Part shown: one piece after another, positions 1-62,245 of the stretch
Position numbering within the stretch: position 1 is the first letter of the stretch
Layout: each line of letters begins with the position of its first letter
Assembly (NCBI RefSeq): GCF_963506605.1
Contig: NC_083276.1
Location: 80,290,001-80,354,000, forward strand
Length of the DNA: 64,000 bases
From: Zootoca vivipara
Lineage: Eukaryota
Direction: 5' to 3'
Program-made: the position numbers and the translations under genes
The notes under the pieces: generated by a model
What the model saw: only the letters and a program-made list of their open reading frames with translations
Told to the model about the DNA's origin: nothing
Database searches by the model: none

Positions 1-845
1 TACTGCATTGTATGGCTTCTTTTCATTTTGTAACGATTTTGAATGCTGGGTGAGCTGTTTTCTAGAATCTCCACTAAATATGAGCGGGGGGGGGGCGGTG
101 TGCGGGGAGACCCTGATATGGAAAAGAAGATGGATAGACAAGACAGGTGCCATATTTTGGCTGGGTAGTAGCCCTTGTACAACCATAGCTTTATGTATTA
201 CTAAATTAGTTCCAAAACCACTTTATGTACACATATTAAAATGATTTTTAAAAAGCTATCTCTCAGTCATCTCCATTTAAAGGGGAGTGTCTGGTAGCAA
301 ACCAAGGAAAGATTTGAGACCCTTGAGAATGTCTGCCAGTGTGTAATCAGTACACTGAATGAAGATTCGATGCTCAGCATCATTTTAAGTAGCTCCTTTA
401 AAAAATATTTGCTCTGGAAAACATGAACAAAAATCACAGGTTTCATAAAAAGGGATAAGCGTTATGCTGAGCAGAGATAGGGAAATGAAGCCATGATGGA
501 AACAGATGAAACTCAAACACTTTGAAAGGGGATTGTGCCTTTCACGTGAAATTGAATATTACAGGCAAGGATGCAGGGAAATATAATAGTATATAAGGGA
601 TTTCTGTCTATGGCAGGAAAAGGTTCAGTTACAAGAATATTGTCCTGATTGCTAGTGGTATTCAGTGAAATGCTTCTAGGAATCATCTGCTTGCACAGAT
701 GGTGTGTGTTTCACCTTCCTGAAGGTTTGTCATAAAAGGGCATTTGCCTGTGACTGGCGGATGAGGTGGTAGTACTTTCAGAATGCAGCTTGAGTGGTGA
801 ACAGTCTGTGGGAGGGGCTTAATGCTGAGTGGGTGGGTTTACCTG

Positions 846-858
846 GTTGCTAGGTGAT
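846..858 (+). promoter_or_regulatory. RFX X-box-like motif upstream of fascin-like gene
   Basis: GTTGCTAGGTGAT (reverse complement ATCACCTAGCAAC) has one perfect TAGCAAC half-site and lies about 95 bp before the ATG. Confidence 0.4.
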
Positions 859-951
859 GATTGTGATCTAAGGGACCAGGATTAATCTCAAATGAGTCCA
901 GATAAGTGATCTGATGAATGGGTACCATTCAAGTCTCTTGTTATTCTCACC

Positions 952-3900
952 ATGACATACTCATTAGAATTTGGCCTTGTTAATGCGGCCAACCGGTACC
1001 TGACTGCTGAACCTTTCCGTTTCCAGGTGGCAGCCACAGGCAAGCAACTGAAGCCTCGCCAGTTGTGGATACTGCAGTTTGTGAGCCCACAGGGAGCTGG
1101 GGCAGCTGGCCCAGGAGAAGGAGCTGGCCAAAAGCTTCACCTGATCAGTGCACTGAAACGCTACTTGGCGGCTGACGCAAATGGAAAAGTCACCTGTGAC
1201 CAGGACAAACCAGGGCCTCAGACCTTCTTTCTCTTGCATCAGTATCCAGATGGCAAGGTGCTCTCTCTCACCCAGGCACAAGCATCCTATCTCTCAAGTG
1301 TAGCTTTATGTCCGATATTATTGGGCTGGAATTCTGGACAAAGAGGGCTAGGCAGAAATGAGGGCAGGTTTGAGCTCAACTTGCAGACTAGTTTGCTGTG
1401 GTGAGAAGCAGTGTCTTTTCTTAGTGTGCAAGTTTTTAGATTCTTGCGGGTAAGTCCAGGCAGCAAATTCCTGCACTCCAGTGCTGTAAAGTACATCAGG
1501 AAGAGTGCAAAATGTCCCTGGACACCCCCCCCCCCATGGTCTCCTTGGGAAGCCAGTCACGTGAGCCAAAGCTCTTTGCCCCTGTTGGCCAAACAGTATG
1601 ATAGTCAGCCACTATGGGCTGAAGGGGAGAAAATGTGTCTGAATAGCTTATTTGAGTCCCTGTGCTAAGAGTTGCCTGGTGTATCCTTCAAGGTGCCCTA
1701 GCCACTTCCCACCCACAACTGGAAACAACTGTAGCACAATGGAACTTGGGTGATCATGGCAACTCCATAAGCCCAAAGGTGTAACGTAATTGGTGTAATG
1801 ATACCTGAGTTTTTTCTGCCATGTTCTTTGCTCTCACTGAGAGTGTTCCTGCTTTTCTGGTCTTGGGCAATGTAGCTGACCAGACATCCTTCCCTCCCTG
1901 CAGGTGTCCTTGCAAAATGAACAGTCCAAGCGCTACCTGGGTGGAGCAGAGGAGAATGTCACTTGCTTTGCCCAAGCTGCCAGCGAAACCGAAAAGTGGA
2001 CCCTCCACCTGGCTGTGCACCCCAATGTTGCCATGTACAGCCCCAACAGGAAGCGTTATGTGCGGTGTGATGATAAAACTGGGGTGCTGCGCTGTGACCG
2101 TGAAATGCCCTGGGGGGCTGAATCAGTCATCACTATCTACTATGATTTCAGAGGTGGGTGGTGGCATTTTCCTATTTTGTTTTCAATTGATATGTGAATT
2201 TTTCTCTCTAATACTGTAACATCTTCCCCCCCCCTTTGTTGGGGGGGCGTGTTAAAGAAGCAAAACAAGCTTTCATTCTGCTGTAGGGTTACACACACAC
2301 ACAGTAATTCCTATTGCAGATGAGGACTTATAGCTACCATACTAACAAGAAAGTTGCTTCCTCTAAACTAAGGATTGTTTAAAGTTTTCTGTTATCCTCT
2401 CCAACTATGGAGCAGATACCTGGGGTAAGTCTGAACACCTGGAAAGGCTTGAGAAATTTGAGAGATGGAGAAAGTCTGTACCTGTCACAGGCTTTCTCCC
2501 ACAGTGAGAAAGTTGCTGCTTTATTCTACAGATATTTGCTTGTGATTTTTACCTGTACATGAGGATTTCTAAGTGCTACAGATAGAACAGGTGGGTGGGG
2601 TGGCCTGGGAAGGTAAAAGTGTTTCTAAGTGGGAGGTCTTAATTCAAAAAGTTTGAGTGACACTGCCTTATTTACACATCTCTATCCAAAAACCACCCAA
2701 GCACCTTCTAAGATAGTCCTCTGTTGTTGATGTGTGGAAAAAGTTCAGTTTGAGTCATTTGCATCTCCTCCAATAGGTCTGGAGTCCAATGGTGAGAGAA
2801 GGCAATTTTCCCCATACATACCAGGTGAATTCAAATTCTGTTTACCCAAGAAGTCACTGTTGCTGGCAGGAATTTTGATTTCCTTAACATCATTAATTAG
2901 CTTGGGTAATTCTTAGAACTACTAATTGCCATATGTAAGACTTTCTGGTAAGTTAGACCCCACTGCACACTTTCCAAATAAAGCAAGAAAGGGAATTGTC
3001 TGTGCAGAGAAGTTTCCAAGTTTTCCTCTTTCCTGACCGTATTGATGTTTGAGGTTCCCCACTCTCCCACACAAACTTTAAAGTGAAATTGCACACTAGG
3101 CTAAAGAATCTAATACAACCAGTTTTTAAAACACGCATGTAGTGTGGATAAAGGTGCAGATGGGAACATGACTTCAATCCCAATCTCAGCTTGCATGTGC
3201 CCATGGCACATCTCACTATACCTGGGTTGGGGCCATGGCCTCTAGCTTTATCAAGCACACACGTAAACCCCCGAAGTAACTATGCAAGAAAAATAGGATG
3301 TAATCTACAAGGAAACAAATGCAGTGTCAGCACCACCAATGCTTTACAAAGCTGAGACCCAATGAACCTCAACTTGCCTATCAGAACAAAGCACAGGGGG
3401 GCTGTTTACACAAATGTACAAATGATATATGAGATTCTAGGCAAGGGTAATACAATGGGAAATGTTAAGGGCGAACAGGACTAGAGTGCTTTAAAGGGTT
3501 GGTGTTTAGAACTGCAGGCAGGGTGGGTCTGTGTGGCAATTCTGCAGTGAAACAAGCATCAGCCCTGATGCTACTTTGTAAGACAGTTGATTTGGAGATT
3601 GTTTTCCGGGTCTGAACATTAAGCTGCTGTCAACCTATCATCTCTCTCGCCTTTGTCTCCAGCAAAGAAGTATGGATTGAGGAATGGGGCTGGCAAACTG
3701 TTGGCTTCCAATGGCTCACTGGTGCCAGATGTCACCCCACAAACTTTGTACTCCCTGGAGGTGCATGGCGGCTTGGTCGCTCTGCGGGATGAGGAGGGAA
3801 AGTACTTGACTGGACGAGAGGGTAGCATGAGAACTGTAAAGATGGACAAACCTGGACGGGAGGAACTCTTCAGCATGGAATCCAGCCCTGCCCAGGTCTC

Positions 3901-6900
3901 AATGCGCTCTACTTCTACTAACAAGTTCATTTGCTGCAGGCCAGGTAAGTCAGGAGAAAACAGCACTATCTATATTGCATTGCACTTTGTGAAGCCTCTG
4001 CAGCTGACTGGCTGTTCTGGTCTGATGAGGTGGAATGTTTTTGACCATTCCACCTGCTCAGAAAATGAGGCACAGTGCTGGTCCACATTCTGCGAGCAAT
4101 GGGACAATTGCCAGTTTGGCTGGATAAAACTGAGATAAGACTGACTTGGGAGGCAGGGTGAAGGCTGGGAGGAGTTCTTAGAAGGTAGGTAAGCTTAGAT
4201 GCAGGGACCTCAGAGGCAAGATGGCTGAAGAGAGGGTGCAGAAGTAAGAAGCAGGAAAAGGGCACATACAATTGAAGTAGCAAGGATCCAGTAAGATTAC
4301 GGTCCCTGAAAAAACCCCACAGCATTTCTTATTAAAAGTGGTGTGACAAAAGTGATAGGGAGGCTAACCAGAATACAAGATGGCCAATCGAAATGGGGTT
4401 AAGTAGGCTGTGAGCTGAAAAAGCAAAAACCTGAGGAAATGAATGGTGTAGCTATAGAACTGAGGCAAGAAGACTGGAAGAAAACCACACAAAGTGCTTT
4501 GACTAGAGAAACCCAGGATGGAATTCAATGTCACTTTAAGGCGATTGTTCTGCTTCCCAGATGAACTGATTTCACCTTTCCCGCACTGTTTGGGGGTTGT
4601 CTTGAACCTGCAGAGCAGATTTGGGGGACCATGGGAGAAGCCATGTAGCCAGAGATCTTCCATAGGGCTCCACTGGTGAGACAGGTTATTTGAATCTACA
4701 CTCTGCACTCCTTGGAAGAAATGAAGTACAGCAAGCCAGCAACTTATGGCACATTTAACTTGTGCACAATTAATCCAGATCTGAAAGAGGATTTGAATTT
4801 AGGCTTGCATGTGACGTTTTGTGCTCTTAAACCAGCCTGCCTCCAAAGATAAAGATAGGAAGGTCCAAATGATCCTAGGTCAGTTACACAGGCGTTTCCC
4901 TCTTTCAATCCATGAAGCACTGATTTCAGCCTGCAAGGAATGCAGAGTGGCATAATGCTAACCTAGGGTGTTTCTTCCCTGCTCCCTGCAGGTGCCGATC
5001 TCTATGCCAATGCTGTGGCTGTTGGCAACACAGAGATCTTCCAGGTGCTGTTTGATGACACCACAAAGAAGGTCTGCTTCCGTAGCCACAGCGGCGCATA
5101 TATGTCCTTGGTGAGTGTGCCTGCCATTTATGAGGAACAGCAGTGATCAGGCAGGACCAGCTATTTCAATTTGTTTCCTAACCATGGAGAAGGACTGTAG
5201 CTCATAGGTGGTAAAGCACCTGCTTTGCATGCAGAAAGCCCCAAGCTTTTTTCAGCCACAGCCACTCATTTTAGTCTTGTCCCCAACCTCCTTCCGACTA
5301 TATTCTACAATGGGCAACACTGAGACTAAGAAGGAAGGAAGCTGACAGGCAGCCCCACCCCACGACTGGTTGCAAGTGAGAATGTGGGGACTGATCAAGG
5401 GCAGAGTGAGGATGGTGGGGCAGGGCCTCCACTGGATACATCTGTGCCCAGATTGTGGTGCACCAACTTAATCTGGAGTTCTTTTAAATGTGAGCAAGAA
5501 GGTAGGTGAGCTGCATCCTCGACACTTGGCTGTGAGCATGTACAAAAATTATGGCCTGGTTCAAAAAACAAAATGACTTAAGCTTGAAACTTGATGTAGT
5601 AGAGGCTTTGCCACCTCTAGTATTCACCTAACTCTCCCCAGATGAAGAAGATATATCTGCACTGTGTGTGTATTAATACAGAAAGGCAGGCTGCAAATCC
5701 AGAGGATCATAATATAAAAAGCAGGGAACTGACAAAAGGAGGCTTGTTAAACAGCAGTAGATAGCTCTTGGTCCTGGACTTGTTTGTTAATAACTTGTTT
5801 GTAAGGGCTGTCTCAATACTTTTCCAAAACATTTTTGTCAACTTTAGTGTGGGCGAGTTACTCTATTCTACCAAGCAAAGCATGGCATTATACACAATCC
5901 TCCTTGTGGAAAAAATGTTTTTTTGTACACTGAGGATGGAGAACCCGAGGCTCTCGAGTTGTTGTACTCAAATTCCTATTGTCCTTGATAATTGGCTGGC
6001 AGTTATTACTCCAACATCCTGAGGGCTTCACGTTTTTATTCCCTGCCACAGATGAAATATGTAAGAGTGCAGTAGGAATGCACAACTTCCTGAACAACCT
6101 CTTCAGAAAAAGCTAACTGCTTAAGCCTGGAGGGCTGGAGACATCTTTTTCAGGTCTGCTATTCACTTACCTGGGAGTAAAAACTTGTTGAACTAAATAA
6201 AACTTATAAGTAGAGTTGAAGGTGGTCTTCTGGCTGCATTGTTGTTCATGGTGTGCACATACACTATCTGCTATGGACCCTGGTCAGAAATTTTGCAGAT
6301 TTTTGTTGTGCTTCAAAACCTACATTGTCTACATCTAACATCCATCTAGAAATCTTATAGTTTGGCTTCAGTCTGGGCTATGGTTCACATAGTGCAACTT
6401 GAAGTGTGAAGTCAACAAGAAAGTGGCTTTGAAAGATGGCTCCTGCCATCCCTATCTTGCTGATGCTAGAAACCCTCCCCTTTTGGAGGTAACTACTGCT
6501 GGACTAACCTCCCTGGTATTGAGATGCTCATGCATTGCTGTACTCTTGCATCACCCACCACAAAGGGATTCTCAGTCTTTATGCAGCACCAAATACCTTC
6601 CACTGAAAATATATCAACATGGATCTCAGAACGTAGCTGATAAAGGGACTGCAGCAGGAGGTTTCTATCAGACAAAGTAAGCCAAAAGCACAAAAAGCAC
6701 TTTCCAACTAATGCATCCTGTCTTTTGCAGGGTCCTAATGACTGTATTAACAGCAACACCAAACAGGACAGGAATGTCTGGTTCGACATCCAGTACCAAG
6801 ACCAAAAGGTGTGTCTCCGCATAGCAGACAAGCACGTGTCCATGCGGCCCAATGGACAGCTCCTGGCAATTCCCAAAGCTGCAGGTACAAGTCGGTAGAG

Positions 6901-8754
6901 AGCTTCTCTTACAAGCACCAGGGCATCAGTGTGGACAGGTGAACACAGCTAGGGTGGGAAGAGAGACTGCACACTGCCAGCTACAAATTAGCTATAGGTA
7001 GTTCTAGGGAAAAGGAATGGAAGCGACAGCCTTCCACTTAAGTCCCTAGATAGCCCTCTAGGAATAATGTGGGGAAAGTGTATGCACAGAAACCAAGCTG
7101 TCCCTGGATATAAAATTGGAACATGGGGAGCCAACCTTAAGTCCATCCTGTGAAATGGCTTTTTAGACACCTCAAGGGCTTCTTGTTGGAAAGCAGCAAC
7201 CAAAACTTGCATAATCTTGCTCTTGCAGGATGGAATGAGTGCTATTTACACTCCTTTTCTTACGCTTTGGAGTAGTAAGAAATCACTACAAATACAGCCT
7301 AGATGAAAGAGAAAAAAACACGCTAAGGCTCACTAAAACACTGCCCCTCTGTGCATATAATCCTGGCCCCCAGAACTGCATACCAAGTAGGTTGACATTG
7401 CTTCTGTAATATGATCTGGGAAGCAGTCAGAGAACGAGTTCCAGTTTGGGGGGGAGCCACCACCAGAAACAGCTATGCAGTTGTCCCTAGTGGTTACTTG
7501 GATGAACTTTGGAGCAAATGCCCCTGACAGTAGAAATCAGGATAAAACCCAAGGCAAGAAACAGTTTCACAGTATCTGAAGTCCAAGCCATTAAAGGCTT
7601 TCTGTGCCATAAGCAGCACCTTGAATCAAGTACGAAAGACTAGAGGGAGACATTGTGAATTCTGGGCCCCTGTTACAACACTCAGCCTGGCTTCTCAGTG
7701 TGGGGTGATTTCTCCTGATCTTTAGCACTGAAGTTGACTTTCCCATGGGAAATGTTTGCCTCTTGAGAGCAAAAGGAAGGGTGGCAAAATAGTTGTCCTG
7801 GAAAGCCAGGTGTGGCCAATGCTAAAGGTTTCCCTTGTAACTTCAGGGAAGTGTGAAGATTTCCTGCTGGTGCTGGTGAACCGGCCACTGCTCGTCCTGC
7901 ACAGTGATGCTGGCTACGTGGGTCTGAGTTCTGACACGAAGTTGGAAGGGAACTGTGTCAGCTATGTTGCCAGCAGCCTGTCACTCACCGAGGAAGGCTA
8001 CTACAACTTCCAAGTTGGTTAGTATGTTTCCAGGTGGGAAGAATTATATTCCAAGGGGTTGGGGTTTCCTAGTATCTGTTGTGAGAGAAACATGACCTAC
8101 TCACAAATGGGAGCTGCCATCAAAGGATTTTTATAAAAAACAAGCTTAGTTTATACAATAGCCATAAGAGGGAGCCAAAACTTGCTTTCCCAAACCAAAA
8201 CAATGCAAGAGTGCATCATCACTATTTCCCAGTTAATCCCACCCCCCTTTGCCATTTGTTTTGCTCCATGACCCCTGGACAATAGTTTTCTAGGCCCAAT
8301 TAAGGATAAACCACTGTTCAGGTGGGATGGCCATCTGTCATGGTTGATTTAGCTGTGATTCCTGTATTGCAGGGGGCTGGACTAGATGACCCTTGGGTCC
8401 CTTCCAACTCTATGATTCTAAGTGTCGGTCATGTTTTCCCTTTATACATGGTTTCTTTCTAAACCATACCTAGTGGTATTGCCATGACGAGCACATCCTA
8501 ATTACCTGTGATTCTTTTACCTTCCTTCCACTAATTCTGCCACTTGACCTGCAGGCAGCAAGTACTGGGCTCTGGATAAAGATGGACAAATCTTGGCAAG
8601 CAGTGACCGTCCCAGCAATTTCACCATCCAGTTTGCATCCTCCAGCTGCCTGATCATCAAAGCACCCAACAACAAGTTTCTTATGGCTGAGCAAGGAGGC
8701 CGACTGTGGGCAGGGGCTTCAGAAGCATCTGGAGCAACACTGTTCCATTTCTGA
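952..8754 (+). CDS. Divergent fascin-family actin-bundling protein (four beta-trefoil repeats), 7 coding exons, 493 aa
   Basis: Exons 952-1257, 1904-2153, 3663-3944, 4992-5110, 6731-6884, 7847-8017 and 8555-8754 are all GT-AG with compatible phases. They total 1482 nt (493 aa + TGA), and the ATG context is caccATG. Fascin motifs run throughout: FGLVNAANRYLTAEPF, KWTLHLAVHPNV, PWGAESVITI, PGREELFSMESSPAQV, GADLYAN, NGQLLA, LVNRPLLVL, KYWAL. It is too divergent to assign to FSCN1/2/3 by eye, and the exon 1 donor (AAG/gtgctc) is weak. Confidence 0.88.
5186..5245 (+). mobile_element. tRNA-derived SINE head fragment
   Basis: ggactgtagctcataggtggtaaagcacctgctttgcatgcagaaagcccca resembles an A-box plus anticodon arm but has no complete T-arm or acceptor stem. 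Confidence 0.5.
8320..8420 (+). mobile_element. CR1 LINE 3' fragment
   Basis: ...ggactagatgacccttgggtcccttccaactctatgattcta is a typical CR1 3' terminus. Confidence 0.75.
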
Positions 8755-8780
8755 GAGCATCTGACCCTGCTCTTCCCACC

Positions 8781-8786
8781 AATAAA
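8781..8786 (+). terminator. polyadenylation signal of fascin-like gene
   Basis: AATAAA lies 26 nt after the TGA and is followed by U/GU-rich sequence. Confidence 0.65.
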
Positions 8787-9166
8787 CTTTTTCTGTCTGG
8801 GCTTACTTTATGCTTATCTCAACTGATGCCCAATTGGCCCCTCTTGGAAATGACCCTTCCTCCGTAAATCCTCCCTCACACAGGGCATACTTGAACTCTA
8901 AATGAAAGCTCTGCTTCCTACAGCAGACCCAAGCCAGGACCCTTTCATGTGAATGTCCTTATGCAAAAACTTTCTGTGCCCATGAGCTCCCTTCTGAACC
9001 GCCTTCATGCAGTTAGGATGATTTGCAAAGCCTCAGTTATCTTAAAGATGTATACCTCTCTTCAGTCCAAGAGGGGTCCCCCATGCTTCTAGGAGCACTG
9101 CTGTTCTCCCAGTGTACCAATGTTTGTCTGAAGCTCCACATAGCTGCAGTAGTTTAAAAATAAATA

Positions 9167-9172
9167 TTTATT
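9167..9172 (-). terminator. probable polyadenylation signal of TMEM216
   Basis: AATAAA on the minus strand (tttatt on plus) about 600 nt downstream of the TMEM216 stop. Confidence 0.5.
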
Positions 9173-9776
9173 CCAAGGATGCAGTAGAAAACCAAGTATC
9201 ACAAACTCAATACACACCAATAACAACACTGATTTGGGGGGAAGGGGCACAAGGCCTGCTGCCTTTATCCCTACCCCCATTCAGGAAGAGGGCACAGGAG
9301 GTAACACAACAGTTAGGGAGGATGAGCAAGACTGCATCCTGAGTCACTGCACACATGCTAGAGTCTTGAGTTGTTAGAATGTACCACGCTGGGGAATTCA
9401 AAGGACACACCAGCTGCAGGCAAAGTCTGATTATTAGGTGGCATTCACTGGCCCATAGTCTTTTGACTTGTGAGAGTCAATTACCCAAGGTACAAAGTTG
9501 GAATGGATCAATTGGCGCCCTCCAGGAGGATTGCAAGCTTAGTTAGGGTGTGTGGGTCTGTCATCTCATGAAAACTCTTTCCAGACACTGTAGACCCTGC
9601 TAATGGTGCTCTACCTGAATGAGCTTGAAATGAGAAGCTGAGACGCCTTCTTTCAGCTTACTGGGGGAATTGGACCCACACCTCATCCTGTCCCGGCCAC
9701 AGAAATGGAGGGTTCATGCAGCCTCTCTCCAATCTGAAGAGCACATGGTTCCATACATTGCAGCCCACAAAGGTTC

Positions 9777-12700
9777 TCAGTAAGAGTCCAAACTGCAGAA
9801 AATAGAGAGCGAAAAGTGAGGATCTTGGCAACAGCGACAGCGAATACCTCTGCCTACTTACAGTGGAACAAACTGAACACCTATTCCAAGGATGGGGAAC
9901 CTGCAGCCCTCCAGATGTTGGAATCCAACTCCCACCATGGCCAATAGTGATGATGGAAGTTGTTGTCTAGCAACATCTGGGGAGCCCATGGGTACTTTAT
10001 CCCTGTTCTATTCCATTGATTCCCCTGTTTGAAGAAACAAGCCAACCGACATAAATATATGTCACCTGTGCAATTTAGCATTACATCGTTGAGCCTGACT
10101 CAATTAGAAAAAGAATGTCAAACTTGTATGCTCTCCCACAACAGCCAAGGGGGACTTCAGCAGGATTTTATGTTTTCTATTTAATTCTACTTTTAAAGAA
10201 TCCTAGCTTAGCATTATGTCTGAACCAGGAATCCTAGTTTAAAACTCTTGTAAGTACCATAATAAATCAACTTCAAACAATGGGTTATGAAGTTGGCTTC
10301 ATAACCAACAGTATACCAATTTCCAGAGAGTATAACAGAAAGGTTTGCATTCAACACAGTGCTAAGAAGAAAGATTTCTACTTGTGCAATCGAACATTTC
10401 CCCCACCGCATGCCCCTTAAATCTGCTCTGGGAATGGCATGGGGCACAGAAGTCCCAGTGTACTAATACTAGTCCTTGCACTAGTGTGGATATTTGGTTG
10501 AATATTGTCCAGTCTTTGGGGGACATTAAAGGCTAAACGAACACATTTATTACAGCTTAAGCTAGTCCATGAAAAATGTATGCCATAACTAATTTGTTAC
10601 TTTTTAATGTGCCACAGGACTTTTGTTGTTTTAAACCAGGATCCTTGGTTCCAACATGATGCTAAATGGGGGTTGTTTAAAAGTGAAAGTAAATCCTCCC
10701 AAGTCCTCCTCCCAGCTATAAAGGAAGAGGGTATGGGGACTCGCACACGAGCCTGAAACTTCATTTACTAAATCCAACATTACATGTATATACAGTGTCT
10801 TAAAAAATAAAATCTAATCAATGCACATAAAAAAATATTTCCCTAAAATGCCATAATGGTAAGCAAGTAAAGTACCTGGAGAAGGCAGCCAGAGTGAGAA
10901 CACCCAGTAACAGCTCCACAGCATAGAAGAGGAGGAGGATAGCATTAAGGATGGCCTCCAGCCGCAGAGCATAAGTCTGCAGCAGCAGATAGTAGGCTGC
11001 CATCACCGCTGCTGGGAAGGTTAAAGCCAGACTGATAGCAAGTGGCACTTTCCGTTGACAGAGGTTCCCTTTTGAGCCTGCCATACACAGACAATATGAG
11101 AAAGAAAATGCATAGACCTGTTCAGCATAAAAGCCACAATATTTGGAATCTGAGGGCACGAAATGAATAGTTCTACTTTTCAGAGATCAGTTCTCATTTA
11201 ACTCACTTAACTAAACAAAAAAATAAAAAAATTGTCCAGTAGCACCTTAGAGACCAACGAATGTGCATGCACACTTCTTCAGATACACTGAAACAGAAGT
11301 CACCAGACCCTTACATATAGTGGGAGGGTGGGGTAGGGTATTTCTCGGAAGGGCAGTAGGAGATGGGTGATTGACGCAATGGGTATGGTAGAACTGTTGA
11401 CTGTGAACAATTATATATTTAAAATAAAAACAATTTTTTTTATTTCGACTGCGTCAGACCAACACGGCTACCTACCTGAATCTAGAATCATTTAACTGAG
11501 AATAAGGAATGAGATTTTGCATTTAACATTTGTACTGTAGTTCCTAAGCTAGGCTCAGGTCAGGAAGGACAGCAAGACTGGATGAATGGGATCTCATATT
11601 TCCACCCACATAATCTTGTCTTGCCTCCTACCTACTCCCGAATTACGAAATGTAACACAGAGCCCCTTTTTCAGCCTTTGGGCATCATTTCAATGGAGGC
11701 ACCTATTCCAGTTCAGCAGAATAATTAGGAAGGCTTGGAATGACGGAGTGAAGGCACTGTCAGCAATTTACACTCTGCTCAACTACTCTACTCTCAAATA
11801 CCTTTGTTGTTGGAGAAGCAGAATTTATTGATGAACCACATTAATAATAATAATAATTATTATTATTATTATTATTCATATCCTGCCCATCTGGCTGGGT
11901 TTCCCCAGGAATCATCTTTTCAGGTCAAGTGCCATCAAAGATGCTCACAAAATGGCAGGTTAGTGCACTACTCGTGGGAACATTTTTATTGAATACTTAC
12001 CAAAAAATATCCGGGTTACTTCAATCCCAAGATAGAGAAAAAGCATTATCAGGTCCAAAGCCAAATTGGCAGAGGGGTAGGGCAACAGGAGTCCTAAGCA
12101 GGTACACAAATGGACATATGCATTAAGCGAACAGCAAAGGCAGATGCTTCTTTCCATTTAATGAATTCCTTAATAAAAGATGAGTGTCTGATGTTGGTTA
12201 ACATATAATGTAGCAGCTAGAATGACAACAAACACTGGGACATGGATGGTTCTGAAAAACGCTGTGAACTCTCAAGCAGCTAGGTGAGGAATAAATAATT
12301 ACCCTATCCACTGTGTTCTTTCACTTTCTTCAGGTGAGTGCTACAAGGTAAATGCAAAAAAAAATATCCTTCTGCAGGCAACCCAAACACATCATCCCTT
12401 CAAAGACTCACCTTTATAGACAAATATGAAAATCTCCAGCAGAAAATATGTTGCGTAATACCAGCCATTCAGGAACAGGAGAATCTCCAGAGGGGTGGAG
12501 GAGAGTTGGCGATCTAGGAGGTGAAACCAGAACATAATTATCTATGGGGTGCACATTTTGTGTTCCACTCTCACCTTCTCTCAAACTTTCTTGAGAGTTT
12601 ATGTACACTTCCTATTGTCCCACTGCCTTCCCCTTGCTTTAGAGCTGAATCAGAGCCAATGGCAATTCTGGTTTTCCCAGGACTGCCATTTGTTCCAATC

Positions 12701-23024: not shown

Positions 23025-26000
23025 CCCCTTCATGGATCAATGCCTTGTCGTGGCGAAGGGGCTTGAATAACTCAGAGAAGCTATGAGCTATGCCATGCAG
23101 GGCCACCCAAGATGGACAGGTCATAGTGGAGAGTTTTGACTAAACGTGATCCACCTGGAGAAGGAACTGGCAAGCCACTCCAGTATCCCTGCCAAGAAAA
23201 CTCCATGGACAAAGACAACAGGCATATAAAAGTTATGACGCTGGAAGATGAGCCCCTCAGGTCGGAAGGCGTCCAACATGCTACTGAGGAAGAGCGGAGG
23301 ACAAGTACAAGTAGATTCAGAGCTGATGAAGCGGCTGGGCCAAAGCCGAAAGGACGCTCAGTTGCGGATATGCCTGGAAGCGAAAGGAAAGTCCGATGCT
23401 GTAAAGAAAAATATTGCATAGGAACCTGGAATGTAAGAACCATGAGTGGAGGTAAGCTGGATGTGGTCAAAAATGAGATGACAAGAATAAATATCGACAT
23501 CCTGGGCATCAGTGAACTAAAATGGAAGGGAATGGGCGAATTCAGTTCGGGTGACTATCATATCTACTACTGTGGGCAAGAATCCTGTAGCAGAAATGGA
23601 GTGGCCCTCATAGTCAACAAAAGAGTGGCAAAAGCTGTAATGGGATGCAATCTCAAAAATGACAGAATGATCTCGATACGAATCCAAGGCAGACCTTTTA
23701 ACATCACAGTAATCCAAGTTTATGCACCAACTACTGGTGCTGAAGAAAGTGAAATTGACCAATTCTATGAAGACCTACAACAACTTCTAGAAATGACACC
23801 AAAGAAGGATGTTCTTCTCATTACAGGGGATTGGAATGCTAAAGTAGGGAATCAAGAGATAAAAGGAACAACTGGCAAGTTTGGCCTTGGAGTTCAAAAT
23901 GAAGCAGGGCAAAGGCTAATAGAGTTCTGTCAAGAGAACAAGCTGGTCATCACAAACACTCTCTTCCAACAACACAAGAGACGACTCTACACATGGATAT
24001 CACCAAATGGGCAGCATCGAAATCAGATTGATTATATTCTCTGCAGCCAAAGATGGAGAAGCTCTATACAGTCAGCAAAAACAAGACCTGGAGCTGACTG
24101 TAACTCAGATCATCAGCTTCTTATAGCAAAATTCCAGCTTAAACTGAAGAAAGTAGGAAAAACCACTGGGCCAGTAAGATACAATCTGAATCAAATCCCT
24201 TATGAATACACAGTGGAAGTGAGGAACAGGTTTAAGGATTTAGATTTGGTGGACAGAGTGCCTGAAGAACTATGGATGGAGGCTCGTAACATCATACAGG
24301 AGGCAGCAACGAAAACCATCCCAAGGAAAAGGAAATGCAAGAAAGCAAAATGGCTGTCCAACGAGGCCTTACAAATAGCGGAGGAGAGGAGGCAAGCAAA
24401 ATGCAAGGGAGATAGGGAAAGATACAGGAAACTGAATGCAGATTTCCAAAAAACAGCAAGGAGAGACAAGAGGGTCTTCTTAAATGAGCAATGCAAAGAA
24501 ATAGAGGAAAACAATAGAATGGGGAAAACCAGAGATCTGTTCAAGAAAATTGGAGATATGAAAGGAACATTTCGTACAAAGATTACCATAATCAAGGACA
24601 AAAGTGGTAAGGACCTAACAGAAGCAGAAGACATCAAGAAGAGGTGGCAAGAATACACAGAGGAATTATACCAGAAAGATATGGAGGTCTCATACACCCC
24701 AGGTAGTGTGGTTGCTGACCTTGAGCCAGACATCTTGGAGAGTGAAGTCAAATGGGCCTTAGAAAGCATTGCTAATAACAAGGCCAGTGGAAGTGATGAT
24801 ATTCCAGCTGAACTATTTAAAATTTTAAAAGATGATGCTGTTAAGGTGCTACACCCAATATGCCAGCAAGTTTGGAAAACTCAGCAATGGCCAGAGGATT
24901 GGAAAAGATCAGTCTACATCCCGATTCCAAAGAAGGGCAGTGCCAAAGAATGCTCCAACTACCGCACAATTGCACTCATTTCACACGCTAGCAAGGTTAT
25001 GCTTAAAATTCTACAAGGCAGGCTTAGGCAGTATGTGGACCGAGAACTCCCAGAAGTGCAAGCTGGATTTCGAAAGGGCAGAGGAACCAGAGACCAAATA
25101 GCAAACATGCGCTGGATTATGGAGAAAGCTAGAGAGTTCCAGAAAAACGTCTACTTCTGCTTCATTGACTATGCAAAAGCCTTTGACTGTGTCGACCACA
25201 GCAAACTATGGCAAGTTCTTAAAGAAATGGGAGTGCCTGATCACCTCATCTGTCTCCTGAGAAATCTCTATGTGGGACAAGAAGCTACAGTTAGAACTGG
25301 ATATGGAACAACTGATTGGTTCAAAATTGGGAAAGGAGTACGACAAGGTTGTATATTGTCTCCCTGCTTATTTAACTTATATGCAGAATTCATCATGCGA
25401 AAGGCTGGACTAGATGAATCCCAAGCCGGAATTAAGATTGCCGGAAGAAATATCAACAACCTCAGATATGCAGATGACACAACCTTGATGGCAGAAAGCG
25501 AGGAGGAATTAAAGAACCTTTTAATGAGGGTGAAAGAGGAGAGCGCAAAATATGGTCTGAAGCTCAACATCAAAAAAACCAAGATCATGGCCACTGGTCC
25601 CATCACCTCCTGGCAAATAGAAGGGGAAGAAATGGAGGCAGTGAGAGATTTTACTTTCTTGGGCTCCTTGATCACTGCAGATGGTGACAGCAGTCACGAA
25701 ATTAAAAGACGCCTGCTTCTTGGGAGAAAAGCAATGACAAACCTAGACAGCATCTTAAAAAGCAGAGACATCACTTTGCCGACAAAGGTCCGTATAGTTA
25801 AAGCTATGGTTTTCCCAGTAGCGATGTATGGAAGTGAGAGCTGGACCATAAAGAAGGCTGATCGTCGAAGAATTGACGCTTTTGAATTATGGTGCTGGAG
25901 GAGACTCTTGAGAGTCCCATGGACTGCTAGAAGATCAAACCTATCCATTCTTAAGGGAATCAGCCCTGAGTGCTCCCTGGAAGGACAGATCGTGAAGCTG

Positions 26001-26246
26001 AGGCTCCAATACTTTGGCCACCTCATGAGAAGAGAAGAATCCTTGGAAAAGACCCTGATGTTGGGAAAGATTGAGGGCACTAGGAGAAGGGGACGACAGA
26101 GGACAAGATGGTTGGACAGTGTTCTCGAAACTACGAACATGAGTTTGACCAAACTGCGGGAGGCAGTGCAAGACAGGAGTGCCTGGCGTGCTATGGTCCA
26201 TGGGGTCACGAAGAGTCGGACACGACTAAACGACTAAACAACAACA
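23025..26246 (+). mobile_element. Full-length Bov-B (RTE clade) LINE
   Basis: About 3.2 kb with a single long ORF and a 3' end gagtcggacacgactaaacgactaaacaacaaca ((CAA)n tail). The 12-bp TSD AAGCAGAGGCTT is at 23013-23024 and 26247-26258. Confidence 0.95.
23205..26237 (+). CDS. Bov-B endonuclease/reverse transcriptase ORF (1010 aa from first ATG)
   Basis: APE endonuclease motifs GTWNVRTM, GISE, QVYAPT, GDWNA, IDYIL and SDH are present. RT motifs YRTIALIS, QAGFR, FIDYAKAFD, GVRQGCILSP and YADD are present. There are no stops or frameshifts. The ORF-track start at 23136 is a TTG. Confidence 0.95.
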   Translation: MDKDNRHIKVMTLEDEPLRSEGVQHATEEERRTSTSRFRADEAAGPKPKGRSVADMPGSERKVRCCKEKYCIGTWNVRTMSGGKLDVVKNEMTRINIDILGISELKWKGMGEFSSGDYHIYYCGQESCSRNGVALIVNKRVAKAVMGCNLKNDRMISIRIQGRPFNITVIQVYAPTTGAEESEIDQFYEDLQQLLEMTPKKDVLLITGDWNAKVGNQEIKGTTGKFGLGVQNEAGQRLIEFCQENKLVITNTLFQQHKRRLYTWISPNGQHRNQIDYILCSQRWRSSIQSAKTRPGADCNSDHQLLIAKFQLKLKKVGKTTGPVRYNLNQIPYEYTVEVRNRFKDLDLVDRVPEELWMEARNIIQEAATKTIPRKRKCKKAKWLSNEALQIAEERRQAKCKGDRERYRKLNADFQKTARRDKRVFLNEQCKEIEENNRMGKTRDLFKKIGDMKGTFRTKITIIKDKSGKDLTEAEDIKKRWQEYTEELYQKDMEVSYTPGSVVADLEPDILESEVKWALESIANNKASGSDDIPAELFKILKDDAVKVLHPICQQVWKTQQWPEDWKRSVYIPIPKKGSAKECSNYRTIALISHASKVMLKILQGRLRQYVDRELPEVQAGFRKGRGTRDQIANMRWIMEKAREFQKNVYFCFIDYAKAFDCVDHSKLWQVLKEMGVPDHLICLLRNLYVGQEATVRTGYGTTDWFKIGKGVRQGCILSPCLFNLYAEFIMRKAGLDESQAGIKIAGRNINNLRYADDTTLMAESEEELKNLLMRVKEESAKYGLKLNIKKTKIMATGPITSWQIEGEEMEAVRDFTFLGSLITADGDSSHEIKRRLLLGRKAMTNLDSILKSRDITLPTKVRIVKAMVFPVAMYGSESWTIKKADRRRIDAFELWCWRRLLRVPWTARRSNLSILKGISPECSLEGQIVKLRLQYFGHLMRREESLEKTLMLGKIEGTRRRGRQRTRWLDSVLETTNMSLTKLREAVQDRSAWRAMVHGVTKSRTRLND

Positions 26247-49700: not shown

Positions 49701-52700
49701 AGCAAGAGAAACTAAGAAGCATGATTAGGAACATTACATCTCTGCCAGGGTGGAGCCAGATGGATTTATGAAAGGTATTGTGCATTTTTTTCTTGAACAT
49801 CTGTGTGATCCTCTGATATCATAAAGGTTCTTCCCCATATATCCCAGTCTTTCAGAACATGGCATACTGATGTCCCACAGTGATATAATGTTCGGTGGAG
49901 ATACACCAGATTAAGCTTCAATGTTCTGCTGTCATATTTGGAGTGTGAAGCTACTGTCCCCAGTAGCTGATTGGTGCCATGTTTTTTTATAGTGTGTGAT
50001 TTATTATATACATTTCAAGCCATATGCTCTGTTTTCTTTTTCTTTCTTTTTTACATACTGCACCTACTCTTAGCTTGTGGCATACTAGTCTGGACAGCAT
50101 GTGCTCGACTGCTGAACCATCCTGCCTAGGGTGTTGGAAAAGATGAGTTTTTCTAAAGCTGATCTAATATGTAAAATGTGATGAGTTTTATCAAACTACA
50201 TATAATCTAAACTTCTAGGCATCACGATAAACATTAAATGGTACAGTAGCTTTCCAAAATGAAGCATGCTTCCAAATTCTGTTCTCAACTTAGAGGTATC
50301 TAGATGATCTGGTATTTTACAGGCCACATTTATGTAAATTTGCATAGTTTTTAATTCTACACAACCCCACTTAACCAATATTCTAACAAGGGAAACTTAC
50401 CAAGACAACGCACAGCAGACCCAGCCACTACACTTAATTCAAGGTAGGATAACCCACCCAAATTGTTCACCATCAAGACTACAGAAGCACCTGAAAGCCA
50501 AAACAAAGTGAGTAAGATTGAAGACACTATACTTAATATGCAAAAGGTGGTGTAAAAAGCTTCTGCATGGCTATTTCTCCACATCTGGGCTAACATCTGG
50601 ATCTACTGATCAATGACTGCCCAATCATACAGTAAATCCCCATTCCAGCAATTGCTGATATTGTAGAAACTCACTCCATGACTGATTTTACAAGCATTTA
50701 TATATATATTGTACTGTATATATATTACAGCTCAGATATAGAAAAACAGTCGTACCTTGGGTTACGAACACCTCGGGTTACGAACTCCGCAAACCCGGAA
50801 GTATTTTCGCTGCGCGTGTGTTCTACACATGCACAAAGTGTGAAAATCGCAGAAATTGTGCTTTGTGCATGCACAAAATCGCACTTTGGGTTACGACCAT
50901 TTCGGGTTACGAACTGCGTCCCAGAACGGATCGTGTTTGTAACCCGAGGTACCACTGTAGCCACAGAAAAAAATATTCCCAGATTCCTCAGAGTAGAAGG
51001 AATAATATATAGGCCAGCCTCAAAATTGTTACTCACCAGACTTGAGTCGCACACGTGAAGCATTGGAGTGACTGGTCATGTGATCCAGCATTATTTTGAC
51101 AACCTGATCTGCTGATGTTATCTGTGAAGAGAACATGTGTAAGGGGGCAGGGTTATATTTCTTCATCAGCAAAAAGGCGACAGGCTACTTACCTTCATCC
51201 TGCGCACACCTGCTTCACCATGGATTCCTACAAAGAGAGCAAGATATCAGATATCAGTTATGGCACCTGCCATGACAATCTTCTTTCTAAATAGAAGATG
51301 ACTGAGTTTAAGGGCACTAATTGATGAAATCCTAGTTGTGCTAGTCAGTGATATATAGTCAGTGAACTACACACAAAAGAAAAATAGTAAAAGAACATAT
51401 CTGTGCCCTGATAGTGTCTGACTGATAATGGATACCCATGCATCACAGGCAATAGCACCTCAGACTGACCCCTAAATAACTCAGAGCATGGACAGAGTCC
51501 CAAAGCAAACGGCATGCAGTCCCAAAGAGACAATGCTCATGAGGACCTTCTAGAGAAGTGGATGGAAACGCATTCCTCACCTAAGCCTAGCTCAAGTTCA
51601 TCATCAGCAATCTGGAAGGTAGGTCTAGATCCAGGAACACTGCAGGGTGATAGACTAATTCCAAGGGTGCCTGTGCAAAAAGAAAATGCCACCTTCCATG
51701 CAGATGTTTCAGCATCAGTACAAGAAAATAGACAAAAGTGTATGTTCCGCTTATGCCCTGGGTTACAATGCACAACTCTAAATGATACTACCGTACAATA
51801 TTGCAATGTAGTTTTGGACTGAAAGGTGCAGTCTTGAGGATCACCTGCTAAACTTATACCAAGCTATTTTGGAATCCCAAGGCATCTGGTTGGGAACTTA
51901 AGGACCACATAGCTGGACAGGTAGGTCTTTGATCTGACCCATCATTGCTCTTCTTAAGTTCTTATACCTCACCTTTTCCTCCAATGACCTGAAGGTGGTG
52001 TACTGTATATGGTTCTCCCCACTTAATCCTCACAACAATCCTGTGTGGGAGGCTAAACTAGGCAATGGTGAATGCTGAGTCCAAATCTAATTATACACTA
52101 ACCACAAAGGTTCAGCCACACAATTGGGGCTCTCTTTCTTTCAGGGATCATTAATTTAAATCTTCAATACATTCACTGCATATCAAAAACATAAACCCTA
52201 TAAAAGACAGCATAAGAAGTTTAGCCAGCATGACCTTGCTAGACTGCTTGATTTGCCATGTGTCAAAGAATAATGTAGCCTTTGGCCAGATGCTTACCTC
52301 CCAAAGAGAGCTACTTAAATACTTACCCATTGAGTGTGCAACAGCAGTAACCTTGCGAGCAATTGCACTCAGACCACAACCTGCCTCAGACAGAGCCCCA
52401 GCGACCTAAACATAAACAACTGTAAGGAAAAATGTTGCTTTGATTTCTCAACAAAAGGATTACAGAAGATTAGCATACATTCCTTCACTTTATACTACAG
52501 GGACAAAGCCAGGTGTGTCAGGACTAAAGGAGAAGAAGAATGGCTGTGTGAAGAATCATGTTTTTATGTGCCTAGGAGTTCATGCACAATATGCAGGGAG
52601 GAATGCCTATGGGCACCTCACACTCTATAACATTCTTAGGCCTCAAAGCATTATTTGCACTTTGGTAATACTACTGTACAGTGGGGTCCTGAGTCAATGA

Positions 52701-56234: not shown

Positions 56235-56915
56235 GCTGCCCCTCTGGAGCTGCGACTCCGGGCTACCAAGCTCAGCAGGATGCTCCGAGAGCCTCAGGCC
56301 GAGGCGAGGAGGGACACCTCCTGCTCCTGAGAGAGAGAGAGACGGCGGCCGCTCAGGGGCGAGAGGCGAAGTCGCTTCTGGCTCCCGTGGGGGCCTGTCA
56401 CTACTGCCTTTACGCGCCTCCCTTTTCGAAGGCGAGAGAGACTTCGCCCTGCAATCCAAACTCCGCCAGGCTCACAGCATCAACCACGCGCGCCCTGCCT
56501 GACAAGGGGCGGGGGGAAGAAGCCGATTGGCCGACGGCAGCGCGAGCTCCGGCAGTTGGCGGTAGCGCGCAGGGCCAGTCGCGCTCCGCACGGAGTCAGA
56601 CGGGAGGGGGTGAGGAGAGTCTCTCCGCCCCCTTTTCTTTTCTTTTTTTCGGAGGAGAGTGGTAGGGTTTACTCCCCTCTGACCAGAGGAGGGCGCTGCC
56701 ACTGCCGTGCGCGCCTCGGCAGCCCCTCTCGTCCAATTTCCCGTGGTGCCCGGCGCCACGCGCGGGCGCTCTAGCGCTTGTCTCTCTGGTGCCGGAGGCA
56801 GTGGTGGCCTTTGGAGGGTGTGCTACCCAGCGCTTCCCCTCCTCGTTGTCCTCCTCCTCCTCCTAGCCCCGTCGCCTTCCGCGGGTCTTCAACAGCCCCG
56901 CTCCCGGATACCGCC
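56235..56915. promoter_or_regulatory. TKFC/DDB1 bidirectional CpG island promoter
   Basis: Head-to-head start codons about 680 bp apart; CpG-dense; GC box GGGGCGGGG (~56506); CCAAT boxes (~56526 minus, ~56733 plus). Confidence 0.85.

Positions 56916-62245
<5,330 letters not shown>

Follow-up and report, generated by a model that had tools for sequence, protein, structure and literature searches.

The question raised by this locus is whether the fascin-like reading frame at positions 952-8754 of the window (the whole stretch of 64,000 nucleotides of Zootoca vivipara that was analysed) is a working gene, and to which vertebrate fascin it corresponds. Reviews of the family count three fascins in vertebrates (PMC7698196, PMC10046292), and the preliminary description had proposed a candidate fourth paralogue here. 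Very probably the window carries a functional, transcribed gene of the fascin family, which is the lacertid orthologue of the proteins named "fascin-like" in RefSeq (hereafter clade X) and is predicted from its sequence to bundle actin.

The coding sequence is built from seven exons on the plus strand, which join to 1482 nt (493 codons and TGA) without any internal stop. All splice ends are of the GT-AG type, and the introns follow amino acids 102 (phase 0), 185 (phase 1), 279 (phase 1), 319 (phase 0), 370 (phase 1) and 427 (phase 1). Exon 1 (952..1257) starts with the ATG at 952, encodes amino acids 1-102 and thus most of beta-trefoil 1, and ends at a GT donor; its start methionine is shared with the Lacerta agilis RefSeq protein P0148. 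Exon 2 (1904..2153; AG/GT, phase 0 in and phase 1 out) encodes the end of trefoil 1 and the first half of trefoil 2, and exon 3 (3663..3944) the second half of trefoil 2 and the start of trefoil 3. Trefoil 3 continues through exon 4 (4992..5110) and exon 5 (6731..6884), the latter colinear with the orthologues and with FSCN1. Trefoil 4 begins in exon 6 (7847..8017) and is completed by exon 7 (8555..8754), with the TGA at 8752-8754. A short 3' UTR (8755..8816, plus strand) follows, in which the polyadenylation signal AATAAA lies at 8781-8786.

The RNA comparison covered a 6000-base stretch starting at 2850, and the junctions between exons 1 and 2 and between exons 2 and 3 lie outside of it. Of the four junctions examined, three are supported by RNA. 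Contigs from run X1 contain the joints 3944/4992, 6884/7847 and 8017/8555, each with GT..AG at the intron ends, and thereby the acceptors of exons 4 and 7 and the donor of exon 5; both joints of exon 6 are found within one contig. That contig covers 8554-8816 and ends at the latter position, downstream of the polyadenylation signal. In the raw reads of run X18, six reads cross the joint of exons 3 and 4 and one crosses that of exons 5 and 6. The first mates of these junction reads are all on the minus strand, which fits RNA from the plus strand in a usual stranded library. The junction of exons 4 and 5 was seen neither in the RNA contigs nor in the raw reads, and expression looks low, with few reads in one of the two RNA-seq runs. 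The gene is intact, spliced and transcribed. The uninterrupted 493-aa frame from seven exons and the polyA signal reported in the preliminary description are thus borne out by frame, splice sites and RNA, and its proviso that spliced transcripts might not exist is answered by the RNA of runs X1 and X18.

All seven exons of that earlier model hold, but an eighth, alternative one had been overlooked. A candidate cassette exon of 48 nt lies at 2776..2823 (plus strand), likewise upstream of the stretch compared with RNA; AG precedes and GT follows it, and it is in frame and adds 16 amino acids after residue 185. In tblastn its translation matches the insertion in Lacerta agilis P0148 with 83% identity over 18 aa, and insertions at the same point are present in the proteins of Python (P0149), Eublepharis (P0151) and Erythrolamprus (P0156). 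This suggests a conserved, optional cassette of 16 aa at the junction of exons 2 and 3 and a candidate second isoform; with the cassette, the 493-aa model becomes the short isoform.

The gene is under purifying selection, as had been suggested earlier from its open frame. Exon 3 differs from that of a related organism (B) at seven positions, six synonymous and one non-synonymous, and its divergence of 2.5% is lower than that of the flanking introns (6.0% and 4.9%). Between Lacerta and Anolis the clade X proteins are 84.9% identical and those of FSCN1 89.0%. Tail to tail with the fascin-like gene lies TMEM216 (10821..12541, minus strand), of which three coding exons were seen, with Pfam Transmemb_17 matches at 12395-12541, 11963-12157 and 10821-11186, in agreement with the placement given before. 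The surrounding block consists of TMEM216-TMEM138-CYB561A3-TKFC-DDB1 and resembles human 11q12.2.

For the local alignment and the tree the joined 493-aa model was used; family assignment, database searches and structural work were done per exon or with orthologues. The Pfam Fascin cut-off (PF06268) is reached by exons 1 (7.6e-10), 2 (7.3e-05), 3 (3.9e-09) and 7 (1e-07) singly, and exon 4 alone gives a weak match (0.03). Since the orthologues P0148 and P0146 each contain four Fascin stretches, the four beta-trefoil repeats described earlier are confirmed. Exon 1 aligns with residues 11-100 of human fascin-1 (E 9e-18) and exon 3 with residues 185-269 (E about 1e-17), and the joined model is colinear with FSCN1 over 477 columns. 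P0146 has 86% identity to the window protein, and its alignment with human fascin-1 spans the full length (3-494 against 10-493, E 6e-99). The structure prediction proposed in the preliminary description was run on this orthologue: its AlphaFold model (pLDDT 90.7, pTM 0.88) has a fascin-1-like fold and matches human fascin-1 structures in Foldseek with TM 0.84-0.91.

A maximum likelihood tree was calculated with care from 21 rows of clade X together with FSCN1 and FSCN2; FSCN3 and the coelacanth clade X sequence were not part of the set. Clade X is recovered with support of 100/100, FSCN1 with 96/99 and FSCN2 with 100/100. Its members in the tree are squamates, turtles, alligator, the frog Ascaphus and six cartilaginous fishes, and the window protein is sister to the fascin-like protein of Lacerta agilis. 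Sharks are represented separately in FSCN1 and in FSCN2, and a further Lacerta protein belongs to FSCN1. Identity of the window protein decreases from 96.5% (Lacerta clade X) over 84% (Anolis), 57-61% (alligator and turtle) and 49% (Ascaphus) to 44-45% (shark and chimaera clade X), and is 36-38% to FSCN1 and 33-36% to FSCN2. Clade X has a crown depth of 0.70, against 0.21 and 0.29 in the other two clades. It is one old gnathostome lineage, apart from FSCN1 and FSCN2, and predates the split of sharks and tetrapods.

A position of the window protein within FSCN1 is ruled out, as the FSCN1 clade excludes it and separate FSCN1 genes exist in Lacerta agilis (P0245) and in Zootoca itself (P0246). 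The same holds for FSCN2, whose clade also excludes it and which squamates possess as separate genes, e.g., in Sceloporus (P0361) and Ahaetulla (P0367). The earlier claim that the protein falls outside FSCN1 and FSCN2 therefore stands. The tree places clade X as sister of FSCN1 (100/100), a relationship that we do not claim; the AU test permits an FSCN1 + FSCN2 clade (delta lnL 0.98, p 0.41). P0019, a JGI metagenome protein, was rejected as an FSCN1 sequence: the match to mammalian fascin-1 (99%) is confined to its first 56%, and the protein is probably a chimera that derives from contamination by a mammal, possibly human. All alignments and trees exclude it and use Panthera P0218 in its place.

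The gene is already known: dozens of RefSeq genomes carry annotated "fascin-like" orthologues, and a study of 2018 described the lineage, so that the candidate fourth paralogue is no discovery of this window. Hara et al. (2018; BMC Biol 16:40, PMC5901865) list "fascin-like (LOC102565591)" in Table S10 as kept in reptiles and coelacanth, and treat it as an "elusive" gene (AmnPhylome_0002944_sub_003) without mammalian or avian orthologue and with FSCN2 as the closest "non-elusive" paralogue by BLASTP score. Our word-index search, with a reach of roughly at least 45% identity, found no bird or mammal member of clade X among 38 matches, which agrees with that table and with the loss in mammals proposed earlier. 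Retention "in squamates or sauropsids" turned out to be too narrow, since sharks, chimaera, coelacanth and Ascaphus have the gene, and also too broad, since none was found in birds by that search. The lineage persists in cartilaginous fishes, coelacanth, Ascaphus, turtles, crocodilians and squamates, with none found in birds and mammals. No use of the names "fascin-4" or "FSCN4" was found in the literature search.

Several residues that matter in fascin-1 are altered. The equivalent of Ser39, the PKC site, is Gln in 11 of 11 squamate rows, Val in turtles and alligator, and Ile or Ser in cartilaginous fishes, and among the tetrapod rows only Ascaphus has Ser; in the alignment it is kept in 20 of 21 FSCN1 rows and in all 18 FSCN2 rows. 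The window protein thus lacks the Ser39 regulatory site of fascin-1 and fascin-2, and Ser274 of fascin-1 is Cys. Eight basic positions of FSCN1 are non-basic (K313, K359, K379, R389, R398, K399, K460 and K471). The C-terminal W-E is gone throughout clade X; in the window protein W-E-Y of fascin-1 reads F-H-F. Further characters found across clade X are a 2-aa insertion at FSCN1 Q182 (the junction of exons 2 and 3), F at 50, C at 306 and S at 458. Many basic surface residues are kept, and we would expect F-actin binding and cross-linking to be retained, with a regulation that probably differs from that of fascin-1, as both Ser39 and Ser274 are missing. The changed basic residues in trefoils 3 and 4 may alter the geometry or strength of bundling. 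With eight basic positions and the C-terminal W-E gone, bundling could even be weakened or lost.

For the relation of clade X to FSCN3, the two readings of the preliminary description, a fourth paralogue or a relocated FSCN3-like gene, have nearly equal standing. It is possible, with slightly less than an even chance, that clade X is a true fourth paralogue, which arose when fascins duplicated early in vertebrate history and has since disappeared from mammals and birds; we give the same standing, just short of even, to the fuller version in which it is a genuine fourth ohnologue, perhaps the sister of FSCN3, so that the ancestor of jawed vertebrates had four fascins that were reciprocally retained. 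Cartilaginous fishes are represented in each of the three clades X, FSCN1 and FSCN2, which are separate from one another. FSCN3 is located on human 7q32, away from the TMEM216-DDB1 block in which clade X is found. The FSCN3 locus is mentioned in PMC3235846. The consensus of 13 orthology engines finds no FSCN3 orthologues older than platypus and does not unite them with the reptile and coelacanth genes, and the phylome and in-depth search of Hara et al. (2018) gave zero mammalian orthologues of clade X. In the Atlas features the "fascin-3" cluster ranks only 6th for the lizard and 10th for the chimaera protein of clade X. In FSCN3 the ancestral C-terminal W-E-F and the L-R-G motif are presumably retained, and it is not known to carry the 2-aa insertion that all of clade X has at the junction of exons 2 and 3. 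The cost of a fourth paralogue is a series of independent FSCN3 losses in cartilaginous fishes, ray-finned fishes, coelacanth, amphibians and sauropsids, required as reports of FSCN3 are confined to mammals; moreover, no species is known with both genes, and the ML tree covers clade X, FSCN1 and FSCN2 without FSCN3.

This cost disappears if clade X outside mammals and FSCN3 within them are orthologues (or clade X a pro-orthologue), one gene that the mammalian line relocated to the PAX4-ARF5 region and that there became testis-specific and fast-evolving; we regard this reading as only a little less likely than a fourth paralogue. The ranges are perfectly complementary, with FSCN3 only in mammals and clade X only outside mammals and birds, and the Callorhinchus member P0165 carries the name "fascin-3" in nr. 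Clade X is also loss-prone and fast-evolving like FSCN3, for which 28-29% identity to fascin-1 and -2 is reported. Human FSCN3, we assume, likewise has seven exons, compared with five in FSCN1 and FSCN2, and resembles the shark clade X proteins in part of trefoil 4. However, the two have different chromosomal neighbours, resources that infer orthology from trees do not unite them, no special affinity between them emerges from the Atlas, and the profile search with exon 1 gave FSCN1, FSCN2, lamprey, hagfish and invertebrate fascins and no recognisable FSCN3; the presumed ancestral motifs and missing indels of FSCN3 would need reversals. Papers on Pax4/6/10 synteny make no mention of fascin, and FSCN3 is absent from one gene-age supplement. 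Finally, it is most improbable that the gene is a young copy of FSCN1 or FSCN2 made within squamates, a pseudogene in decay or a product of wrongly joined exons: the low RNA read counts are the sole point in favour of this reading, and it is refuted by the open frame, the canonical splice sites, the spliced RNA, the 6:1 ratio in exon 3, orthologues that reach to sharks and a clade with full support outside FSCN1 and FSCN2.

If clade X is a fourth ohnologue and distinct from FSCN3, four fascins is the ancestral number and the family offers a clean case of reciprocal loss, in which mammals kept FSCN3 and sharks, coelacanth, some frogs and reptiles kept clade X. "Three vertebrate fascins" would then be a mammal-centred view. 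If it is the FSCN3 orthologue, vertebrates have three fascin lineages and not four, the history of FSCN3 extends over 450 million years, and its slower-evolving relatives could explain the original role of a testis fascin that is dispensable in mouse. On either reading the gain is modest: annotations exist in many genomes, and the lack of the gene in mammals and birds is in the literature; what the lineage adds is that non-mammalian jawed vertebrates carry an unstudied, divergent fascin and putative actin bundler without the Ser39 phospho-switch, whose trefoil-4 surface is altered and whose conserved micro-exon is optional.

Among known systems, the window gene belongs in one fully supported clade with the RefSeq "fascin-like" proteins of Lacerta agilis (P0148), Anolis carolinensis (P0145) and Alligator (LOC102565591). 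It agrees with P0148, its 96.5% identical relative, in length, start codon and an optional cassette of 16-19 aa, and does not differ substantially from the set, in which it represents the short isoform from another lacertid genome. With fascin-1 (FSCN1; 1DFC, 3LLP, 8VO5) it shares, judged from the orthologue model, the four-beta-trefoil fold over the whole length, and K22 (R), F29, K41, K43 (R), R149-K150-R151, K247, K250 (R), R271 (K), K353, K358 (R), R383 and K464 are kept. Unlike fascin-1, to which identity is only 36-38%, it falls in a separate clade, has Gln and Cys in place of Ser39 and Ser274, and shows the disordered Gly/Ala-rich loop in trefoil 1 of the clade X protein, encoded at 1084-1128 in exon 1. 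Two extra introns fall within what we take to be the exon 1 region of FSCN1. Fascin-2 (FSCN2), the retinal and hair-cell protein, has family and fold in common with it at 33-36% identity, and again forms a separate clade (100/100). Fascin-3 (FSCN3), from mammalian testis, is like clade X the divergent, fast-evolving third fascin of its host, with a complementary taxonomic range; it differs in chromosomal neighbourhood and in its reported 28-29% identity, compared with 33-38% of clade X to FSCN1 and FSCN2.

The fascin gene at 952-8754 (+) is real, intact and expressed. Positions 1-9500 were read and the exons joined by script; the seven plus-strand exons (952-1257, 1904-2153, 3663-3944, 4992-5110, 6731-6884, 7847-8017 and 8555-8754), with AG at all acceptors and GT at all donors, add up to 1482 nt and give 493 open codons followed by TGA, with a poly(A) signal (AATAAA) at 8781-8786. 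The intact 493-aa fascin with poly(A) signal of the preliminary description was thus confirmed. Single exons or orthologue identifiers served as search queries, whereas the joined 493-aa model was used inside scripts only. Tested singly, exons 1, 2, 3 and 7 each reached the curated Pfam cut-off for Fascin, and exons 1 and 3 match human fascin-1 residues 11-100 and 185-269, respectively (E about 1e-17).

The four fascin beta-trefoil repeats claimed from the sequence are present as well. The orthologues P0148 (fascin-like protein of Lacerta agilis) and P0146 (86% identical to the window protein) carry four Pfam Fascin stretches each, P0146 aligns end to end with fascin-1 (E 6e-99), and its AlphaFold model (pLDDT 90.7, pTM 0.88) superposes on fascin-1 structures with TM 0.84-0.91. 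Disorder in the model is confined to residues 48-56, a Gly/Ala-rich loop; the corresponding stretch of exon 1, SPQGAGAAGPGEGAG (1084-1128, +), is the sole low-confidence loop of the predicted structure and is longer than the matching loop of FSCN1.

Although the seven exons were borne out, a 48-nt exon at 2776-2823 had been overlooked. P0148 is 510 aa long and has 16 additional residues after position 185, precisely at the exon 2/3 junction, and 15 of these 16 are identical in the translation of 2776-2823 (+), which lies in intron 2, in frame, with AG before and GT after it. The proteins of Python, Eublepharis and Erythrolamprus show related 19-aa insertions at this junction, which are absent from other RefSeq isoforms. 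The segment is a candidate alternative cassette exon, conserved across squamates, that would add 16 aa.

A search of sequencing runs returned DNA runs with the stretch, small runs with 0.10-0.15 of its words (the exon share of the searched stretch is 0.19) and raw RNA-seq runs under the same species label. Four runs were mapped onto 2850-8849, a stretch that starts downstream of the cassette exon and leaves junctions 1-2 and 2-3 outside. RNA contigs of run X1 span the joints 3944/4992, 6884/7847 and 8017/8555 (3-4, 5-6 and 6-7) with GT..AG ends, and the 3' end of one of them is at 8816, 30 nt beyond the poly(A) signal. In the raw RNA run X18 six reads cross the exon 3-4 joint and one crosses exon 5-6, the first mate always being on the minus strand. 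Run X17 had next to no reads on 2850-8849, and junction 4-5 was seen in none of the four runs. The gene is therefore transcribed from the plus strand and spliced, though the depth is low and the tissues are unspecified. In intron 6, at about 8340-8420, a short dispersed repeat attains depths that add up to thousands in RNA-like contig sets, with many reads continuing into unrelated sequence; a SINE-like element with expressed copies throughout the genome is the probable explanation.

The downstream genes were called by Pfam on stop-free segments of the window. TMEM216 (10821-12541, -) adjoins the fascin gene tail to tail. The fascin RNA stops near 8816, and the final coding exon identified for TMEM216 occupies 10821-11186 (-), which leaves at most about 2 kb between the 3' ends of the two genes. 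TMEM138 (15.5-21.0 kb, -), a cytochrome b561 gene (from 31.2 kb, +), TKFC, a Dak1-domain gene (exons at 52697-53560, -), and DDB1 (exons at 56775-60442, +) follow in the human 11q12.2 order, which the TKFC and DDB1 exons carry up to the window end. CPSF7 was not seen within the 64-kb window and is presumably located upstream of it. The interval from TMEM138 to the cytochrome b561 gene holds a 1033-aa ORF (23136-26237, +), and the DDB1 start coincides with a GC-rich island (about 56-57.5 kb).

In a profile search exon 1 found six near relatives at 58-99% identity, of which those with names are turtle and cobra proteins annotated as 'fascin-like'; identity then falls to 49% or less, the next groups being fascins of lampreys and shark and chimaera proteins that are likewise called 'fascin-like'. 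The turtle protein P0125 as query matched 38 proteins, from squamates (Lacerta agilis, Podarcis, Anolis, Varanus, Hemicordylus, Tiliqua, geckos and snakes), turtles, Alligator, Ascaphus, sharks, rays and Callorhinchus, plus one invertebrate protein; no bird or mammal was among them. FSCN1 genes separate from this lineage were found in Lacerta agilis, Anolis and Zootoca, and separate FSCN2 genes in Sceloporus and Ahaetulla; sharks likewise have separate genes for both. A metagenomic protein, P0019 (JGI, contig of 1954 nt), aligns with mammalian fascin-1 (99%) over no more than its first 56%; it is probably a chimera that stems from contamination by a mammal, possibly human, and was left out of alignments and trees.

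A maximum-likelihood tree (76 rows, 495 columns, LG+C20+F+G4, no FSCN3 rows) places the window protein with 13 reptile rows, Ascaphus and six cartilaginous fishes in clade X (support 100/100, stem 1.13 changes per site, crown depth 0.70), apart from FSCN1 (96/99, crown depth 0.21) and FSCN2 (100/100, crown depth 0.29), with cyclostome and invertebrate fascins outside all three. The window protein therefore falls outside both FSCN1 and FSCN2, and its lineage split off before sharks and bony vertebrates diverged. Clade X is united with FSCN1 (100/100, branch length 0.063), but an FSCN1+FSCN2 clade is not rejected by the AU test (p 0.41), so that either branching order may be right.

The closest protein in a local comparison is P0148, with 96.5% identity to the window protein, which assigns the window to a lacertid lizard; identity is 84% to Anolis, 57-61% to Alligator and turtles, 49% to Ascaphus and 44-45% to shark and chimaera members of clade X, against 36-38% to FSCN1 and 33-36% to FSCN2. 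Between Lacerta and Anolis clade X retains 84.9% identity (FSCN1 89.0%), between Lacerta and Callorhinchus 44.5% (FSCN1 78.2%); the divergence is therefore mostly old and clade X well constrained within squamates. An unspliced contig of the related organism B (run X3) covers intron 2, exon 3 and intron 3 (3414-4565) at 2.5-6% divergence: exon 3 has seven differences (2.5%), six of them synonymous, and the flanking introns differ by 6.0% and 4.9%.

Reviews count three fascins, and the name 'fascin-4' was used in no paper found in the literature search. The lineage had nevertheless been listed by Hara et al. (2018; PMC5901865, Table S10) as the 'elusive' gene 'fascin-like (LOC102565591)', with FSCN2 as its retained paralogue, present in two alligators, two turtles, two geckos, anole, python, garter snake and coelacanth and absent from human, dog, opossum, chicken, zebra finch, Xenopus, gar, zebrafish and stickleback; their wider search gave no avian or mammalian orthologue. 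The proposed lack of a mammalian counterpart agrees with both searches. That this lineage exists and is missing in mammals and birds had thus been published, even if the fascin literature never discusses it. The preliminary observation was correct and its interpretation reasonable, but the gene is not a new discovery.

Clade X may be a fourth fascin paralogue separate from FSCN3, a reading that we place just short of probable. Its chromosomal neighbourhood differs from that of FSCN3, which counts against orthology, as would the ancestral motifs that FSCN3 presumably retains and its presumed lack of an indel common to all X members. Neither the consensus of 13 orthology engines (PMC8570013) nor the Hara phylome (PMC5901865) joins the two, and in the Atlas the fascin-3 cluster ranks no higher than 6th for lizard X and 10th for chimaera X. 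A separate FSCN3, however, would require about five independent losses. The same consensus assigns FSCN3 to the platypus stratum (PMC8570013), so that the distributions of FSCN3 and X are complementary; this, and the nr name 'fascin-3' of the Callorhinchus member, make it possible, and only slightly less likely, that clade X is the FSCN3 orthologue, against which the neighbourhood, the engines, the phylome and the Atlas ranking stand.

Compared with FSCN1, the window protein of clade X keeps F29, K41, R149, K150, R151, K247, K353, R383 and K464 and has conservative changes at K22(R), K43(R), K250(R), R271(K) and K358(R), whereas K313, K359, K379, R389, R398, K399, K460 and K471 are non-basic. 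The titles of fascin-1 mutant structures (S39D, K41A, R149A/K150A/R151A and K358A) point indirectly to the importance of some of the residues compared; the others are regarded as functional too. At the Ser39 position all squamate rows have Gln, turtles and alligator Val, cartilaginous fishes Ile or Ser, and Ascaphus Ser. Position Ser274 is occupied by Cys in the majority of tetrapod X rows, while the majority of cartilaginous-fish rows retain Ser, and the C-terminal W-E is gone in 21/21 X rows. From these residues we infer that the window protein may be an actin cross-linker that has lost PKC control and has an altered trefoil 3-4 surface.
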